Source of the DNA: Paramicrosporidium saccamoebae KSL3
Lineage: Eukaryota > Fungi > Cryptomycota
NCBI GenBank assembly: GCA_002794465.1
Contig: MTSL01000105.1
Location: 1-32,000, forward strand
Reading direction: 5' to 3'
DNA: 32,000 nt
Position numbers and translations under genes: made by a program. Shown here in pieces: positions 4,758 to 25,683 of the stretch; the first letter of the stretch is position 1; each line of letters begins with the position of its first letter. The notes under the pieces are model-generated. The model searched no databases, had not been told where the DNA came from, and saw only the letters and a list, made by a program, of their open reading frames with translations.

Positions 4758-4781
4758 GAGCCGGGGTAGCCGGACCAGGCT

Positions 4782-4962
4782 ATCCTCTCAAGCCTTTTGG
4801 CTTAGATCAAGTGTAGTATCTGTTCTTATCAGTTTGAAAACTGGTATGTCCCCACTGGGGACAACGTTTTCGAGCTAATTTTTTGCGGGGTCGGCTGAAC
4901 TGCTTGCAGTTGGTCGGCCACCGGTGTCCTTGGCATTGCAGTACCGCCATGCGACGCCGAAT
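4782..4962 (+). ncRNA. U2: U2 spliceosomal snRNA
   Basis: GCCTTTTGGCTTAGATCAAGTGTAGTATCTGTTCTT (branch-point recognition GTGTAGTA at 4811-4818); stem IIa tatcag/ctggta; stem IIb tgtcccc/ggggaca; Sm site AATTTTTTG at 4877-4885; stem IV loop ATTGCAGTACC. The 3' end is approximate. Confidence 0.97.
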
Positions 4963-5381
4963 GCATATATAACAAAATGAATTCCATAGCAAAGTAGTGG
5001 TGTGAGTCGGGTATGTGGTGCGCTCGTATTGTGCAGTCACCAGCGTTCTGTGGCTGCGTTATGCAGAGAGTACCATGGTTGTTCCTCTTGTGGTTACACC
5101 TTTACAACACCATGCTAGGCTGTACCTTTATTAACGCCGTTGTCACTCTATGGGATTGATTATATAAACGCCTTCCTAAATGAAGCACTTAGTATTTTCA
5201 TAGGATGATATAGTATTGCCACAATTCCGCTACTTTACCCCCTCTATCCCCTCCCTACCCGTTTACTCCCCTATTCCCCATTACACCACTGCCACCATGA
5301 CTCATTTGCCAGCTATGGTAGTGCTGGCAATCAGATTGACAGCAAGATTTAAATTGAGAATCGCCCCAATCCAGCTCAACC

Positions 5382-13342: not shown

Positions 13343-15306
13343 TTATTTTTCGGGTCGAGCACTTTTGGATTTTTCAGGGGGCGCAGACTCATCCTCCGGC
13401 ATCCTCGGCGACTTTTTCATCTTTCCCAGGTTCCATTCCACTCCTGTCTCTACTCCCGCTTCCGTTTCCGGCTCTGAGTCGTCCTCATCCGGATCGCCAG
13501 ATAACTCGCCGAGCGACGAAATGCGCATTTCCATCTCCAGCAGATTGTCAAATCCGTTCCCCTCAACCGGTATCTCAATGGACGGCGTCTCTTCAAAGAA
13601 ACCCTCGCCTTCGTAATCATCTCCATCCAAATTCCACGGCGTTTCGGGCGAATCGCCTTCACTGTCAGTGTCGCTGTCGTCCGAGGAGAATACAAAGCGA
13701 TTCGGCAGACTGGCTATCACTTGTTGGCAAAAATAGCGGGCAAGTTGTTCTTCCGTACCAGTGGCAAATAGGCCTGTGAAAGAAGCCACCCCATTTGCAA
13801 TGTCTTCATTGGGAGGGGGAGGAGGTGCCTTGGAGCCTCCCAGAACAAGGGCATCTTTGATTTTGGTGTCGCGATATGACAGTTCACAGTACTCTTGCCA
13901 ATCCTCGTGCTCCAATTCAGTTGCCAGCTCTTTTCCTAACTCCTCTCCCTGTCTTTCCAGTAGATCCACTATTTGATCGCCGATCATGGTAATGTGTCCC
14001 ATGTGTCCCAGTCTATTTCCTCTCGGTCTCTGCATGATGGAATCATTGATCCTCTGCGTCTTTACAATCCGTGCAGTCAGCTTGCACTCCTTGAATATTG
14101 ATACAATCAATAGCCGGTGGATTTCGTAATTTCCTGTGAAAATGTTTCTCAAAAAATCAAACACTTCAGAGTGAAGCAGGTTGTTGTGCTGATGCACAAA
14201 GAACAATTCCTACAAATTAGTGTTCCATTCCATTGCAGTACCAGGAGAGAGTTGGCCGTGCCCAGAGACAAGATTGACTGCACAATGCTGGCATTCTGCA
14301 GGTACATGACGTGTGAGAATAATTTGACAGCTTTTAATCTCAAGAGACCCACAGGGTTGATTGGTCCTGATGGAGATTGGTATTGCGGCAGCGCTGCAGT
14401 GGCCCGGGAAGAGAGGAGCGCATGCAGTTTGGAGAGAAACGGATTAACCATCACCGCCACCTTTTCTATCAGTCCAGGCCAGCCCCTTTCTTCTCGACTC
14501 TGTACAATTTTCACCACAATCTGACAGAAAATATCTGTAACACATGCAAACAGCATCACATCCGGATCTTCAACAATGCTGCGCTCTAATACGGGACCAA
14601 ATTCCGCAACCATTGATTTCACTATGACAGGCACAGGGAATTCCTCTGGGAAGGGAAACGATAAAAACCCAATGATGACATTTAATGTGGAGATTTGGAT
14701 GTTCGAGTCGACGTTCTCCTTTAACGTATCAAAAATCTGTCTAAAAATAATCTGCTCATCAATTAGCCATCCAAGAAGTAGTGCTTCCCCCTCCTCAGTC
14801 CGCAGGGAGAATAGTCGAAACAAGACGTCACAAACCTCCATATTCCCCAGATAGAGCATCAAATCATTTACAACCTCGGGCCGCCGCCTCAATGAGTTGC
14901 TAATCTCCTTCGGGATCTTTCCCATCAAATGAACCAGCACCCTCGACCAGCACACGAGAAACGGCGCCATAGGTCTTTCCCCTCGTGGAAATTGCCAAAT
15001 TGGGTCGAGCAACGTGTCCTTTTCTTGCAGTCGCTCAAATAAGATTGAATGCTCTGAGCATATCAGCTCACACGCAATCAACGGATACCTCGTCCCCTTC
15101 TCCCCTTGCAATCCATGGCCCATCGCATATTCAAGGAGTCGGCCCAGTGTAGCTTCTTGGCCCAGATAGGCGAGGACCTTTTCGTCGCCGTTGCGCGTGC
15201 GCAGGATAATATTGTCTTGGTCCAGCAGGTCGTCCAGACCTTCCAGGCCGCGCTCTAGAATGCCATCGAGGTTGGCCGTCTGGTTACTATGACTCGGCCA
15301 GTACAT
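13343..15306 (-). CDS. SIT4/PP6 phosphatase-associated protein (SAPS family); exons 15306-14242 and 14209-13343 (643 aa)
   Basis: MYWPSH...LDDLLDQDNII, RYPLIACELIC, LLRLKAVKLF. A 32-nt intron GTACTG...CTAATTTGTAG gives LLELFFVHQHNNLLH. Also RGNRLGHMGHITMI and an acidic tail. Confidence 0.9.
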
Positions 15307-15367
15307 ACGTCTGTCTGTACGTCAGCGACAATTAATGCGCTTTAAATTTAAGATGGAAATGGCTTTG

Positions 15368-16569
15368 TTATTTCGGTTTGAAGAAACTAAGCAAGGAACC
15401 CTGCTTCTTTCCGCCATTCTCAGGCGTCGGTGTATTCTTGGCAGCGGGTTTTTTTGTGGTGGAATCTCCCTTGTGCTGTTCTTGGCTTGACGAATTCTCA
15501 TCGACTGGCACCATCTCGGTTATCATTTCAGTCACTAAATATCCATTTTCCATAAATGTCTTTGGCACTTTGATCGCTTTCATCTTGGGCCCAGTTGGCT
15601 CGCTTCGTATGGTGGGAGTCTCATCGATTTGCATTTCGTCCTCCAAAACTGGCTCCACCGGTGCTACTTGTTCCTCATCGCCACTCGAAAACGTCACGAA
15701 TGACTGGTTTGCGAGCTTTAGATCCTTGGCTTCAGCCGAATCTGACTCTGAAGCCGAGATTAAAACGGTTTCCGTCTCATCGGCGCTAAAAATGTCCGAT
15801 TTTAGCTTGCTCTTCAGATCGACTGCCAACTTTTTCACACTAGCATTCTTCCCCTTCTTGTTAGCCACACTGGTGCTACTCTTTTTTGGCTTTGATTTTG
15901 CCGGTATCACAGTTTTCGCAAGCTTTTTTGCCGCCTTGGGTGCAACAATAGGATCTGCAGTATTAGCAATGGCGACTTTGGGTTGGCTGTCAACTACCTG
16001 TTCCATCTGGACTTGTCCCTTCTGCACTGGCTCCGCCTGGGCTTGTCCCCTTTGTACTTGTTCCGTCTGGATTTGTTCCCTCTGCACTTGTTCCGTCTGG
16101 GATTGTCCCACCTGGGCTTGTTCCATCTGGGATTTCTGGTCGGTGGGATCCACAAAGACAGTGTTAGGCATCATAATTCCGGGCTCAACAACAAGCTTTT
16201 TGTTAACGGCAGCTAGCATGGAAAAATCGGAAACATTGTCGATTTGCAGACTATAGCAATCCGCCACTGCCTCCTCGCCTTCCAGTAATTCATCTGCCCC
16301 GACAACAGCAATACGAAATCCCCCAGCATCTAATGTTCGTTGCACCAGAAAAGTAGCGTTAATGCTGCTCTTGTGGCTCTTCCAAAATTCATTCAATTCA
16401 CTAGAAATTCAATATAGAAAACCTGGGCGTACTGTTGTGCTTGGCTAATCGTCATTTTGCATTCAACAGCCAGCAGCTTGCAGGTAACCTATACCATTAT
16501 CCATCTAACAATGCCGGTTACAATCCTCTTTTCCTGCAAAATCGCTCCTTCTAGCCATAATTGTGCCAT
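15368..16569 (-). CDS. POLD3: DNA polymerase delta subunit 3 (Pol32/Cdc27); exons 16569-16522, 16488-16433, 16400-15368 (378 aa)
   Basis: Spliced N-terminus MAQLWLEGAILQEKRIVTCKLLAVECKMTISQAQHELNEFW, CYSLQ motif, C-terminal PIP box KQGSLLSFF; introns of 33 and 32 nt. Confidence 0.85.
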
Positions 16570-16609
16570 CCCACAACGGCCCTCCTTCCCCGGTCTTACA
16601 AATACAGCG

Positions 16610-16834
16610 AACCTCGACCAGGGTCTTCATCGGGAACGATGGACGAGGAGCACCACTGGGACGCTAGTCGTCCTAGTTTGTGGTGTATATACCTCCGGAG
16701 CGTTTCGCGGTAGATGAAGGGTGCTCGCCGCAAGGCTTGAGCGCCCCTGCTGTATATTTCAGATCGCGCCCGAGCCGTTATGGCTGGCCACTAGTGGGTC
16801 TTGAGGGAGGGGAAAAACCATACAGCAGATAATT
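16610..16834 (+). ncRNA. snR30: snR30/U17-type H/ACA snoRNA (5' end uncertain)
   Basis: H box AGATGA at 16712-16717; internal hairpin gggtgctc/gagcgccc with a GCAA loop; 3' hairpin basal stem ctgctgt(16747-53)/acagcag(16822-28) enclosing m1-like ATATTTCAG (16754-62) and exact m2 AAACCAT (16815-21); then an ATA box (16829-31) plus 3 nt. Confidence 0.8.
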
Positions 16835-16869
16835 TCTCATTGTAAAAAAATCATCCATCCATTGAGAAT

Positions 16870-16955
16870 AGTGTGCCGTGGTGATAGTGTTATAATAAGT
16901 GCCGTAATAAGAGCGTTGCAATAATAGTGACCTAGTAATGGTGTCGTAATAGGCG
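16870..16955. repeat. Degenerate 13-15-bp array (gtgYcgtaataRg-like)
   Basis: Recurring taataag/taatag/gtgccg/gtgtcg units. The reverse complement loosely resembles the 4502-4613 unit (ttattat-R-gcac). Confidence 0.45.
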
Positions 16956-17310
16956 CTTATCAAACCATGCTCACTACCAGGCAATACCGGCGAGGTTTGT
17001 CTAGTGTCGAGTTTTTATGCAGTACTCCCCTTGTGGTGTGGTAGACGGTAGGCTAGCCGTCCATGCATAAGGCGCAATTGACCACAGCTAGCGGGTAGTG
17101 GTTAATGTGAGATATATAAAAAGACTAGGTGTAGATACAGGCCAGGACTGTGAGAGTGTATCCACAGACTAGGACTGATTTGACAATCACGTAATGCCAT
17201 GAGTAAAACTGTCGCTTTGTTTCATATTATAAGCGATACATTCTGCTCAGCAACCCAGCAGTACAACAACCCGGTAATACACAAGAATGCATCTGATTAA
17301 TTCACTACAG

Positions 17311-17490
17311 TGTACCCACTACACGGCTGACTCATTCACTCCAATGTATCCACCACAGAGCCGATTCGTTCACTCTAATCTATCCACTACACGGCCAGTT
17401 CGTTTACTCAAATGTATCCACTACACAGCCGCTTTATTCAATACACAGCCGCTTTATCCACTACTACACGGTCGATTTGTTCACTCCAAA
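17311..17490. repeat. Degenerate 34-bp minisatellite, about 5 units (tgtatccactacacggccgattcgttcactccaa)
   Basis: Units start at 17311, 17345, 17379 and 17413, followed by rearranged partial units ending next to the BAR gene stop codon. Confidence 0.85.
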
Positions 17491-17495
17491 TAGAC

Positions 17496-18455
17496 TCAGT
17501 TGAGAGCTGATAAAATTTCACTGCATTTGCGATGATAGACAACTTGCGCCTGAATCAATGCCTCAATGCAGTGGGTAGCCTCAGTCTACATATTAGATTC
17601 ATCAAAGTTGTACATATTGGATAAACGACTTCATCTCACCAATTGCTTCTTCACACGCAGAACTAAATTCCTTCTCGAGTAGATCTACTTCAGACTGCAG
17701 GTTAGCTGGAGGGGCTCCACGGATCGCCCTGAGACGGGCCTTGCAGGCATCCAGTTCCAGCCGGACACGAGTTGCACTCCTCCGGGCCCTCTACTCATTG
17801 TCACATACGCAGTCTCAGTTTTACATTGGCATTATCATAGGCTCCGGCGTAGGTGGAGAAGGGTTCAATAAACTTTCGGTTCAGTGTATGATTAAATTCC
17901 ATGCGGGCCTCTCCAAGCTTTGCCTGGATCTGTCCGTATCTCTGCAACAAGTCAGCCGCGGGTACATCGGTGGTGTCGCGGCTAAGTAAATCAGCCCCTT
18001 GAAGACAGACTTCTGCAGTGGCATGTTGAATGGTGGGTGGGAAACGCGACTCGGAGCGAACCTTGGTTTTGGTTCGAAACTCTTCAAATTTGGCATTGAT
18101 GTTGTCCATGGCGTCCATGAATGAGTCTCCAATTGGGGGCGCTAAACTGTCAAAATCCCAAGTGGCCGTACAGTAGTCATCCGAGGCATACATCTGCTTA
18201 GTCGCCCTCATCAGTCCATCAAACACAATCTTGATTTTGTCGACATTCTGTGAGGATGACCTTCCAGGACCCATTGTTTACCTCATCCAGCTGAACATAT
18301 GCTGGAGGAAAATTGGTAGTTTCCTCGGCAGTTCCCATTTTTTCTTGTGCAAACTAGACTGTTATTTGGGACTTGCTGCTTACCTGCTTGACTTGGTCAA
18401 AGCCCTTGGACATTTTCTTGGAAAAATCATCGAAACTTTGAATCGGCGGAGTCAT
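17496..18455 (-). CDS. BAR-domain protein, Gvp36-like; exons 18455-18384, 18353-18282, 18247-17825, 17790-17614, 17585-17496 (277 aa)
   Basis: Four phase-0 introns (30, 34, 34, 28 nt) give KGFDQVKQFAQEKMGTAEETTNFPPAYVQLDENVDKIK...RVRLELDACKARL...IEALIQAQVVYHRKCSEIL, an N-BAR/Gvp36 pattern. Confidence 0.85.
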
Positions 18456-18518
18456 GTTTTCGAGTGCGCAATTTACAAATTAAATGAATATTTAAAGAGT
18501 CGAATCGACCATAGGCCG

Positions 18519-18863
18519 ATGGCATCCTTTGTGGAGGACGAGGAGATTTGTTACGAGCCGGTAATAGAAGTGGCAGCCATAGCCTCCCAATTTGAATATA
18601 AGGAAAACGTACGGAATGCACCGGTTGGAGAGCGACGCCGCAAGACAGAGAGAGAGACGGACGAAAAACGACTATCGGGACGACAGAAACAGATTGATTA
18701 TGGAAAAAACACGATCGGATACGAAAGATATGTTGCCAAGGTCCCAATAAACGAAAGAAAACGCGGGGATCCAAAGACACCAGATAAGCATCAAGTGTGC
18801 AGTAAACGGAGCTGGGACGGACAGATCAGCAAATGGAGACGCCAGCTCCACCATTATGATTAA
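18519..18863 (+). CDS. SLBP: Histone mRNA stem-loop binding protein (minimal, 114 aa)
   Basis: ETDEKRLSGRQKQIDYGKNTIGYERYVAKVP...PKTPDKHQVCSKRSWDGQISKWRRQLHHYD matches the SLBP RNA-binding domain (RRQKQINYGKNT...PKTP...SRRSWDQQIKLW...LH). Confidence 0.93.
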   Translation: MASFVEDEEICYEPVIEVAAIASQFEYKENVRNAPVGERRRKTERETDEKRLSGRQKQIDYGKNTIGYERYVAKVPINERKRGDPKTPDKHQVCSKRSWDGQISKWRRQLHHYD

Positions 18864-18911
18864 TGTGATAACTAAATACTCTTAAAGTCACATTGGACCG
18901 GGGGAATTTGG

Positions 18912-20357
18912 ATGAGCAAACCGTCTTTTGAGCAGGTTGTGAATGTATCTCCTCTGGAAGAGACCAATCCAGGAGGACGTCTTGCCGAGGGGAAGCTGCT
19001 GCGGGCCGGAGTCAGCACCGGCAGCTTTCTGGCTTTCCTCTTCTCCGCCATGATGGCGATTGCGGGCCTAGTTTTTATCAATGCCGACCAAACCTATATT
19101 ATGGTGGACATTTTGGACTACCCGCGAAGCCAAGTGGGCACGGCAGCGGGTAACTTGGTGTTCTATGATGAGCTCCTTTCAATGCTGATGGTGTCGACAT
19201 GGGGTGCACTAAGCGATCGAATTGCACGACGATGGATATTTGCGAGTGGATTGGCACTAATGGGCCTGGCCACAGCATTGCATCCGTGGGCCACCAGCGT
19301 GTTTCCCAACAGCATCTCGACATTCTTCTCTTCCCTGTTGGCCTTCCGACTGCTCTTTGCGCTCGGCGGCTCTGCATCCACAGCCATGCTAACTGCCTTT
19401 ATTGGAGACTATTCCCGCGAGAGTAGTCGTGCCAAGGTAGCCGGAATTACCGGATTTAGCACGGGCATTGGAGCCCTATTTGCCGCATTAGTCCTCAGTC
19501 GAATCCCAACCTTTTTCATGCGCGACTCTAATCTGGTCCCCGGCGGACTTAAGGACGTCCCCAATGGCGGTGCCACTCTGATTATCACATTCGCCATAAC
19601 GGGTGCTTTGCTGCTTCTGGCCGCCATAGTAGCAGCACTGGCCCTGAGGCCACCGCCCGACCTCTTTGACGGCACCCATCGGAAGCTTCCACTGACCAAA
19701 CGAATCGGCGTGGGATTGTCAGCAATGTTCCATCCGCTAATTGCCCTCGCCTATGCATCCGGGTTTGTAGCTCGAGCCGACTCCATCGCTCTGACACTCT
19801 TTATAGCGCCCTGGGTTGACAATTATCTGACGGCACAGGGTTTGTGTCCGCCGCGAGACCCCCAAGTGTTGACAAGATGTCAGCCGGCAAAGAAATTGGC
19901 GTCCACGCTCATGTCAGTAGCACATTGTGCCATGTTGCTGGGTGCGCCACTGTTTGGCATTCTGGCAGACCGCATCGGTCCCATAGCTGCCATCTCCATC
20001 CCAGCGGGTTGTGGACTTTTTGCATTCTCTCTGCTGTCCAACATGTCTGCGCCTAACACCCCAATGGTCTACTTTGCCATGGGACTTGCCGGTATTGCTG
20101 ATATTGGAATGATCATCACCAGCATGGCTCTTATGGCCGGCGTCTCTTCTGCTCCCCATCGTGGAGCCCTTGCAGGCGTCTATTCCTTCTTTGGCGCCCT
20201 CGGCATCATTGTCACCTCCAAAGTGGGGGGTTGGCTGTTCGATGGAGTCAAAGAGACGGCTGCGTTTTGGGTGGTGGCGTTGGCCAGTGGTGGGGTCTTT
20301 GTGGCGGCCCTGCTGGTCATTTATAATCGACGAATCATCCCGCCGCTTGATCTATAG
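18912..20357 (+). CDS. Major facilitator superfamily transporter (12 TM-like)
   Basis: Motif A-like WGALSDRIARR and FGILADRIGP, multiple hydrophobic helices, HRGALAGVYSFFGALG. Confidence 0.9.
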   Translation: MSKPSFEQVVNVSPLEETNPGGRLAEGKLLRAGVSTGSFLAFLFSAMMAIAGLVFINADQTYIMVDILDYPRSQVGTAAGNLVFYDELLSMLMVSTWGALSDRIARRWIFASGLALMGLATALHPWATSVFPNSISTFFSSLLAFRLLFALGGSASTAMLTAFIGDYSRESSRAKVAGITGFSTGIGALFAALVLSRIPTFFMRDSNLVPGGLKDVPNGGATLIITFAITGALLLLAAIVAALALRPPPDLFDGTHRKLPLTKRIGVGLSAMFHPLIALAYASGFVARADSIALTLFIAPWVDNYLTAQGLCPPRDPQVLTRCQPAKKLASTLMSVAHCAMLLGAPLFGILADRIGPIAAISIPAGCGLFAFSLLSNMSAPNTPMVYFAMGLAGIADIGMIITSMALMAGVSSAPHRGALAGVYSFFGALGIIVTSKVGGWLFDGVKETAAFWVVALASGGVFVAALLVIYNRRIIPPLDL

Positions 20358-20417
20358 TCCTAGTTTTGTGATAAAAGCCGTATATAGCATATATAATGTA
20401 TTGTGTACCATCCCGCT

Positions 20418-20762
20418 CTAGAAAAGCGTGCAGGATCTACTCTTTTTGTCAAAGCTGCAGTTAAGAGTTACGATAAACTCTGAATCTTTTAGTGCTACCG
20501 ACGTCAGACTGCTGACAACAAAGGAACACTCTCTCCCCTTACTCGACAAAATAATACGGTCAATGTCGGTTACTGGCCAGTCCACCACAACCTCGGTCTG
20601 TTTTGGAGTCACCTGGAACGCAGTGTAGCTGTCGCTATCGTTCACCCACACTCGGAGCTGATCCACTCTGCCCTCGGTGGTTTCAAATATAAAGCGTGTA
20701 CGAGACAGAAAGCCGCTCCCAGACGCAATTATGAACAGGGCAGAAAAGAGAAACGTATACAT
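20418..20762 (-). CDS. Small secreted protein A (114 aa), C-terminus KKSRS-CTLF
   Basis: Signal-like MYTFLFSALFIIASGSG, alternating beta-strand pattern, CaaX-like end. Confidence 0.75.
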   Translation of the reverse strand: MYTFLFSALFIIASGSGFLSRTRFIFETTEGRVDQLRVWVNDSDSYTAFQVTPKQTEVVVDWPVTDIDRIILSSKGRECSFVVSSLTSVALKDSEFIVTLNCSFDKKSRSCTLF

Positions 20763-21021
20763 TCAGAGTAATAACTAGGTAGATGGCGTTGGCCAAGAAA
20801 CCCCTGCGTCAATAGCATTCCTCTAGCGCCACCCAAATATAGATAAACTAAAAGGCTGCACATGGACAAGTATTACCAACGCTGTCAGCAAGAGGAGCTT
20901 CCTCACGGTAACTCGCTTTCAACGATTGGCTGTCGGCGGAGAAGCGGCTCGGAGAGGTATCTATAACTAGTCCCTGCAACTCAATCCATCATCACTTTAC
21001 ACATGTTGAATCTTTCAGTAT

Positions 21022-24546: not shown

Positions 24547-25683
24547 TTATAAATCGTGTATATACGGATAAACTCTGAAATCATTATACAGCAAGGTGCC
24601 ACTCTCATTGTAATGTAAAGCAATGTAACAATCGTGACAGTACGCACACGGATTATCATTACCCAGCCGATCATTGAGTGTAACCCAGCAAGCATAGCTT
24701 AGATCGCAAATCCGACATTTGCGTCTCTTCCTTCTCAAGTGATAGAGCTCAATTATGCCAGACCTTTCCTCAGGGGGGAGACCCCAGCGGGAGAGTTGGG
24801 CGTGATCAAATGGATGATCAAGGCGCAATTGCTCGACGACAATGTAATGCTCACATCGGCCACAGTGTACAAAGGAGTATGGGCGGCCTAGACGCAAGGG
24901 AACATCTAGCCAGGTGGTTTCATGCATGGCACGCATAGCGTAGGACCCGAAAAACTGTCTTCTGTCAGGATCTGCGTTGATCCACATACGAATAGGATGT
25001 GAAAGGTCCCGTGCGGCGGGATTGGAAATGTCACTATAAAAAGCGCCTTCGATGAAAAAGTATGAAGGAAGGAAATGCTCAGTGGAAGTTGGAGAATCTG
25101 CCCCGGGCACATTGATACCTGGAGAGGACGACCTTGGGTGGCCTTGTCGCGTAATCACCCGCTCGGAAAGACATGCGATCCGAGCTCTAAATTCTGTCAA
25201 ATATACAGACGCAAGAACATCAAATGTCTGCATCCTGGTTCCAGGCTTATTGCTGGAATAAACTGAAATGGTCAGGACAACATTAGGCTCTAAAGTTTCA
25301 GTGGAATGCTCCAAAATGTCCCGGGAAAGGACACTGTGCCGTGCAAGCCCAACCTTGTCCTGTAAGGCATTCTTGTATACGGTCATGGCCGACATTTTGC
25401 ACGAGGCAAGCCGCCTTTCCAGTTGAGACAGGCGGTCCTCAATTCTCTCAAATTCTTCGTTATCGTGTCCAGGCCCAATGACGGCGTCATTCTTGGCCTC
25501 AGCAGTGAAGAGCCGACAGGCAAGAGAAATATCATGTCCATCTTCGCGCTCAACTGTCATCCGATTAGTATCAAAGTGCTTTAGCATGCTCTCTACATGG
25601 CTATGGTCTATAGTATCCATGGTCCTTTGCCAGGTATTTGCCAACTTTGCAGGCTCAACAACATCGCCCTCATTCGTATTCAT
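24547..25683 (-). CDS. SNAPC3: snRNA-activating protein complex subunit 3 (SNAP50)
   Basis: SYFFIEGAFYSD, LRLGRPYSFVHCGRCEHYIV, and the Zn finger RKCRICDLSYACWVTLNDRLGNDNPCAYCHDCYIALHY...FRVYPY. Confidence 0.92.
   Translation of the reverse strand: MNTNEGDVVEPAKLANTWQRTMDTIDHSHVESMLKHFDTNRMTVEREDGHDISLACRLFTAEAKNDAVIGPGHDNEEFERIEDRLSQLERRLASCKMSAMTVYKNALQDKVGLARHSVLSRDILEHSTETLEPNVVLTISVYSSNKPGTRMQTFDVLASVYLTEFRARIACLSERVITRQGHPRSSSPGINVPGADSPTSTEHFLPSYFFIEGAFYSDISNPAARDLSHPIRMWINADPDRRQFFGSYAMRAMHETTWLDVPLRLGRPYSFVHCGRCEHYIVVEQLRLDHPFDHAQLSRWGLPPEERSGIIELYHLRRKRRKCRICDLSYACWVTLNDRLGNDNPCAYCHDCYIALHYNESGTLLYNDFRVYPYIHDL

Follow-up and report, generated by a model that had tools for sequence, protein, structure and literature searches.

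The gene at positions 18519–18863 of the analysed stretch is an SLBP orthologue that stands alone and is native to Paramicrosporidium saccamoebae (Rozellomycota). This stretch, called the window in the following, comprises the first 32,000 nucleotides of contig MTSL01000105.1 in assembly GCA_002794465.1. Probably, the two-module protein marks or stabilises the parasite's own histone mRNAs via their 3' stem-loop in a U7-independent manner. The deposited model of the gene, PJF18762.1, is wrong. That P. saccamoebae has SLBP is already known from a preprint dated 16 October 2026 (10.64898/2026.10.14.759114), which also contains the core of what an earlier note on this DNA had inferred. Additions to published knowledge are the corrected gene model, the tail-less architecture of the protein and an N-terminal motif of its clade.

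The SLBP gene and its deposited model

The gene, its neighbours and the intron that distinguishes the deposited model are located as follows.

18519–18863, plus strand: complete, stand-alone SLBP gene (ATG at 18519, TAA at 18861–18863, 114 codons, no intron)
18456–18518, no strand assigned: divergent BAR/SLBP spacer of 63 bp between the two start codons
17801–18455, minus strand: 5' part of a BAR-domain gene with exons 18384–18455, 18282–18353 and 17801–18247; it may extend past 17801
18912–20357, plus strand: separate MFS transporter gene of 481 aa (Pfam MFS_1), starting 48 nt past the SLBP stop
18795–18887, plus strand: spurious 93-nt intron of PJF18762.1, part of the unique two-intron solution, which fuses SLBP to MFS

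The sole Pfam match of the 114-aa protein is SLBP_RNA_bind (PF15247, E = 2.8e-32, 111 bits at a cut-off of 27), with residues 47–114 covering positions 1–69 of the 70 in the profile. This HMM search bears out the near-complete SLBP RNA-binding domain that the earlier note had claimed. Its description of a 114-aa protein stopping at the domain end likewise holds: the open reading frame ends in LHHYD*, D114 is the final domain residue, and right after the TAA a stop follows within a few codons in each of the three frames. An intron that excises the stop codon while sparing the domain was considered and ruled out, since the stretch from the last helix to the TAA contains no GT and the downstream frames are closed.

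The head-to-head distance of 63 bp to the BAR gene, also taken from the earlier note, was recovered as the ATG-to-ATG gap. The BAR gene was spliced by hand using GT-AG introns of 30 nt and 34 nt, and the spliced product scores above both Pfam cut-offs (BAR_2, 41.4 bits; BAR, 38.8 bits). The 63-bp spacer is presumed to be a shared promoter. Compared with positions 1669–1731 of L006, a relative described below, it is partly conserved (e.g. TGAATATTTAAAG) though synonymous sites are near saturation. This conservation suggests a shared compact promoter element.

Relatives of the locus were found on five contigs (L002–L006). L006, a JGI metagenome contig with about 90% nucleotide identity, carries this ORF as well, again with 114 codons and an identically placed stop; the two SLBPs differ in seven amino acids, and sequence identity drops to 31% directly after the stop. 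In L003, L002 and L005, which are more distant environmental relatives, SLBP has its own stop two codons past the domain. The order BAR (minus)/SLBP (plus) is kept in L002, L003 and L006, with SAPS further out on the BAR side in L002. A downstream gene on the plus strand is readable in two of the contigs: in L003 the homologous MFS start (MSARTCKPSFEQVV) lies about 250 nt past the SLBP stop, and the next called gene of L002 begins 326 nt past the stop.

An intron within the SLBP domain, after VP[KR], is present in L003 (2534–2569, 36 nt, containing TACTAA) and in L005 (494–541, 48 nt). It is absent from the SLBP genes of the window, L006 and L002, which indicates that members of the clade have lost or gained this intron.

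The window SLBP is under strong purifying selection. Against L006, dN/dS values according to Nei-Gojobori are 0.032 (whole ORF), 0.044 (aa 1–46) and 0.022 (domain) at a dS of about 0.9. Against the more distant relatives pN amounts to 0.11–0.24, with synonymous sites being saturated.

The GenBank annotation gives a different picture, with one 660-aa product across 18519–20771 that combines SLBP_RNA_bind and MFS_1. Exactly this 660-aa sequence is deposited as PJF18762.1 (UniRef100_A0A2H9TM13) and labelled "sugar transporter", and an exact look-up in the protein collection retrieved neither the 114-aa SLBP nor the 481-aa MFS product. By enumeration of GT-AG introns, the sole two-intron solution for 660 aa consists of 18795–18887 (93 nt) and 20316–20492 (177 nt). 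The first of these introns deletes SLBP residues 93–114, that is 22 residues with helix C and R97, plus the stop codon. These 22 residues are conserved, and purifying selection acts on them.

It is barely conceivable that the SLBP-MFS fusion is the true product. The deposited model does have a transcript basis, as Trinity transcripts served as evidence for the MAKER annotation of the genome (PMC5701793). Overlapping transcripts and spacers of 48 nt, however, readily yield fused models. Introns that are evident in the neighbouring BAR gene and in SLBP genes of the relatives measure 30–48 nt, as opposed to 93 and 177 nt in the fusion, and the 93-nt intron would cost the protein conserved domain residues including R97. 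Moreover, four relatives have their own SLBP stop; the MFS or next gene is about 250–326 nt away in two of them, and in two the sequence after the stop is unconserved. Synteny, the conserved stop codon and selection contradict the fusion.

As a consequence of the deposited model, proteome-based surveys inherit a mislabelled P. saccamoebae SLBP with a truncated RNA-binding domain. In the published survey of fungal SLBPs, PF15247 was run against NCBI proteomes (10.64898/2026.10.14.759114); for P. saccamoebae it presumably matched the truncated fusion PJF18762.1. The strings 'fused', 'truncat', 'C-terminal', 'transporter' and 'TPNK' do not occur in the text of that preprint, and no other paper in the literature collection searched links SLBP with Rozella or Paramicrosporidium.

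Two further observations concern deposited models on the BAR side. The 1180-aa 'SAPS' model (13343–18274, minus strand) appears to merge SAPS and a 342-aa gene with exon 3 of BAR, and BAR exons 1–2 (18282–18455) are absent from every deposited model.

The RNA-binding domain and its flanks

Within the protein, four elements are relevant for the comparison with other SLBPs.

18537–18623, plus strand: clade-specific N-terminal region, aa 7–35 (DEEICYEP...FEYKENVRNAP), shared by the relatives
18657–18860, plus strand: SLBP RNA-binding domain, aa 47–114 (Pfam, match to 4tux and 4l8r chains, AF2, Foldseek)
18777–18788, plus strand: TPDK, aa 87–90, counterpart of metazoan TPNK (alignment to 4l8r_C)
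18807–18809, plus strand: R97, counterpart of human R181 (alignment to human SLBP)

The 114-aa protein was modelled with AlphaFold2 (AF2) from an input alignment of 20 sequences. The pLDDT is at least 93 over the domain, for which helices are predicted at aa 49–63, 66–74 and 96–111, and the N-terminal 44 residues are of low confidence. Among PDB entries the best Foldseek match is 4qoz_C with a TM score of 0.94 (normalised to the target) and an rmsd of 0.6 Å. Significant matches are SLBP chains only, and no unrelated fold was found with E < 1. Judging from this model, the domain has the three-helix SLBP fold and is superposable on the solved SLBP domains.

Human SLBP, whose domain was solved in ternary complexes with stem-loop RNA and 3'hExo (4QOZ/4L8R), has the same three-helix fold with 55% identity; the alignment contains one one-residue gap (E = 1e-18). 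The motifs RQKQI-YGKNT, TPxK and S-K/R-R-SWD are common to both proteins. They differ in their flanks: human SLBP has about 125 residues before the domain, including the SLIP1 motif, and about 70 after it, whereas the window SLBP has 46 unrelated residues before and none after. The best sequence match among solved structures is the Drosophila domain (4TUX/4TUW/4TV0), which aligns ungapped with E = 7e-20 and shares the fold. According to the entry title of 4TUW, however, the crystallised Drosophila fragment includes a C-terminal region past the domain, and this region has no counterpart in the window SLBP. The SLBPs described for early-diverging fungi, including Rozella allomycis, P. saccamoebae, chytrids and Blastocladiomycota, belong to the same family with a conserved domain; they resemble the window SLBP in having no SLIP1 motif, and few U7 factors are reported for these fungi (10.64898/2026.10.14.759114).

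Two sites known from the human protein were inspected. Human T171 is a phospho-site whose phosphorylation increases RNA affinity, and R181, the sole residue in base-specific contact, recognises the G in the second base pair of the stem (PMC10388802). T87-P88 of the window SLBP align to human T171-P172, and both residues are invariant in 20 homologues. Human N173 is replaced by Asp, an exchange common to most of the non-animal homologues aligned, and K90 of TPDK is conserved. R97 is invariant in both alignments, A1 (20 homologues) and A2. Based on these alignments, the putative guanine-reading Arg (R97) and the putative Thr-Pro switch (T87-P88) are kept.

The region C-terminal to the RNA-binding domain is absent from the window SLBP. 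In alignment A1 all of the other homologues (19/19) run on into a tail with Pro and acidic residues. For the five clade members with a readable C-terminus the tail comprises 0 aa (window and L006) or 2 aa (L003, L002 and L005), and tails of at most 5 aa were found in 6 of 200 SLBP-like proteins collected. In animals, the region C-terminal to the SLBP domain is needed for processing.

In place of the animal N-terminal part, the window SLBP shares the motif [DE][DE]EI[CD]YEP … [FY]-x-YK…VRNAP with L006, L003, L002 (P0211), L004 (P0080) and L005 (P0083). The region has a pLDDT of about 57–60 in the AF2 model and is predicted to be disordered (aa 7–35); it is a candidate partner-binding linear motif. 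In L003, a short tandem expansion of AATGTAAGA-type units encoding NVRNVRNVSNVRNV was observed in this region (2366–2406); the corresponding part of the window SLBP has NVRNA only once.

The SLIP1-binding motif of animal SLBPs consists of a Trp, a Val four residues on and subsequent acidic residues (PMC3763545). The N-terminal motif of the window SLBP was ruled out as such a W-x3-V-E-x2-E motif, because aa 1–46 contain no Trp. The closest SLIP1-like pattern, Y12-x3-I-E, contains a Pro and is not kept in the relatives. The missing C-terminal tail and the missing SLIP1 motif fit the idea of a minimal form that had been put forward for this protein. With its domain and a head of 46 residues, it is about the smallest natural SLBP among those compared here.

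Origin of the gene

P. saccamoebae is a rozellid (Cryptomycota) and an intranuclear parasite of Saccamoeba (PMC5701793). It is exceedingly unlikely that its SLBP gene stems from contaminating host DNA or was recently acquired from the amoeba. An exhaustive representative search with SLBP yielded 2668 matches, the best of which are environmental proteins. The nearest named homologues are from a streptophyte alga (68% identity), Entamoeba, red algae, oomycetes and insects, and no named fungus is among the matches of the length-extended search. This order, together with a short and highly conserved domain that yields no resolved phylogeny, would be compatible with a foreign gene. Entamoeba marina, however, is 67% identical in the domain, no higher than the alga; by sequence identity, the window SLBP thus appears to have no special affinity to the sole amoebozoan seen. 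In addition, SLBP is found across early-diverging fungi (10.64898/2026.10.14.759114).

The surroundings of the gene also speak against a foreign origin. SLBP lies inside a contig of 93,366 bp, is surrounded by fungal-type genes, and the base composition is even across the window. Its neighbours are only 63 bp and 48 nt away, and they recur next to SLBP in several divergent relatives. Contamination or transfer, too, is at odds with synteny, the conserved stop codon and selection.

The fungal-type gene set that the earlier note had recognised is indeed present. The window contains genes for a Tah18-type diflavin reductase, an exportin-5/Msn5-type karyopherin, SAPS, SNAPC3, an LRO1-type acyltransferase and MDM10, besides U2 snRNA. 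The LCAT/LRO1 ORF is 97% identical to a Paramicrosporidium saccamoebae protein, and the next named matches, from Rozella allomycis and Mortierellomycetes, are at 41–44%.

Three of the loci concern small RNAs. A full-length U2 spliceosomal snRNA gene is located at 4780–4966 on the plus strand (Rfam RF00004, 146.5 bits). A homologue of SNAPC3, a subunit of the snRNA-activating protein complex, is encoded at 24547–25683 on the minus strand (Pfam, E = 8e-45). In animals the SNAPC complex drives snRNA-type promoters; SNAPC3 is therefore relevant to the question whether U7-like RNAs could be expressed in this lineage. In a gene-poor stretch, positions 16611–16834 (plus strand) match the Rfam family SNORA73 (H/ACA snoRNA) below threshold (21 bits, E = 0.19), which could reflect a divergent snoRNA or chance.

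Histone stem-loops and the proposed role of SLBP

No histone gene was detected in record positions 1–55731 of MTSL01000105.1 by Pfam labels and tblastn with the four core histones, and none in the contigs of the five relatives. The window has no Rfam match to Histone3 or U7, even at E up to 10. A scan of the whole window with the stem-loop pattern GGYYYTTYTNARRRCC, allowing at most two mismatches, returned 4 matches with 4.1 expected, which corresponds to chance.

The published survey (10.64898/2026.10.14.759114) reports that SLBP is absent from Dikarya and present in early-diverging fungi, and that stem-loops lie downstream of most P. saccamoebae histone genes, H3 being the exception. Cryptomycota are described as having comparatively conserved stem-loops, and also mixed states of stem-loops and poly(A) signals. 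The SLIP1 motif was found in Metazoa only. Few fungi are reported to have factors associated with U7; LSM11 and a U7-like RNA are given for Rozella, whereas on this point P. saccamoebae is not mentioned. Outside animals, the survey accepted any 6-bp stem with a 4-nt loop and one mismatch within 300 nt, followed by RNAfold, and the same screen also calls hairpins in Dikarya, which are without SLBP (10.64898/2026.10.14.759114). We estimate about one chance candidate per 300 nt for this screen before the RNAfold filter. The published stem-loop screen is permissive and not specific.

The earlier inference was that this lineage retains stem-loop control of histone mRNA, possibly without U7. Retention of SLBP itself has gained support from the genuine domain, the strong purifying selection and the native position in an early-diverging fungal genome. 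That P. saccamoebae controls its histone mRNAs through stem-loops, and does so independently of U7, is plausible and has been reported in the literature.

For the mechanism, we propose that the window SLBP would bind the canonical stem-loop with 6 bp and a 4-nt loop and a G at the second base pair, and that the target stem-loops would sit near the 3' termini of histone mRNAs made by the parasite itself. Since it has neither the C-terminal region, which serves U7-dependent cleavage, nor the SLIP1 motif, which serves translation, SLBP would most likely only mark or stabilise these mRNAs and recruit a partner through its N-terminal motif. The formation of the 3' end would be left to other machinery, probably cleavage and polyadenylation. 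Such a role is compatible with the state of "stem-loop plus polyadenylation, little U7" proposed for Cryptomycota (10.64898/2026.10.14.759114).

Alternatively, the domain may have been kept but repurposed, for instance for non-histone stem-loops or in storage or repression, with histone mRNAs being ordinary polyadenylated transcripts. We regard this as rather unlikely. With the tail and the SLIP1 motif both lost, the effector functions of animal SLBPs are gone. The missing stem-loop after H3, the mixed states in Cryptomycota and Coemansia, a fungus with SLBP but without stem-loops, point in the same direction (10.64898/2026.10.14.759114), as does the low specificity of the published stem-loop calls. 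On the other hand, each RNA-contact feature tested is canonical and very strongly constrained, which is most simply explained by a canonical target. Furthermore, in Rozella allomycis loops are reported about 26 nt past the stop of all core histone genes (10.64898/2026.10.14.759114).

A very improbable explanation is that SLBP is a parasite effector, i.e. a bare domain released into the nucleus of the host amoeba, where it would occupy the stem-loops of host histone pre-mRNAs without processing. P. saccamoebae grows within the host nucleus (PMC5701793), and a competitive blocker would be expected to consist, like this protein, of the domain without the processing tail. Given the SLBP of Entamoeba marina and the joint occurrence of LSM10 and LSM11 in several slime moulds (10.64898/2026.10.14.759114), the host probably uses the same loop. 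However, the N-terminus (MASFVEDEEICYEP...) is acidic and has no hydrophobic signal-peptide core, several environmental relatives have the same architecture, and histone stem-loops of its own are reported for the parasite (10.64898/2026.10.14.759114). In the most far-reaching form of this idea, just as improbable in our view, SLBP would be a competitive decoy in the host nucleus, and the histone supply of the host would be uncoupled from DNA replication. In a milder form, the clade would have evolved a two-module SLBP with a new N-terminal motif that couples stem-loop recognition to non-U7 machinery for 3'-end formation or decay.

The presence of SLBP in early-diverging fungi overturns the textbook view of fungi as being without stem-loop control of histone mRNA, a step just made by the broad survey that names P. 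saccamoebae (10.64898/2026.10.14.759114). What the present analysis adds to this published finding, namely the corrected gene model and a minimal architecture that is conserved and strongly selected in the clade, is useful but modest. As a minimal SLBP provided by nature, the window protein lends itself to the question of how the domain functions in the absence of the animal modules for processing and translation.
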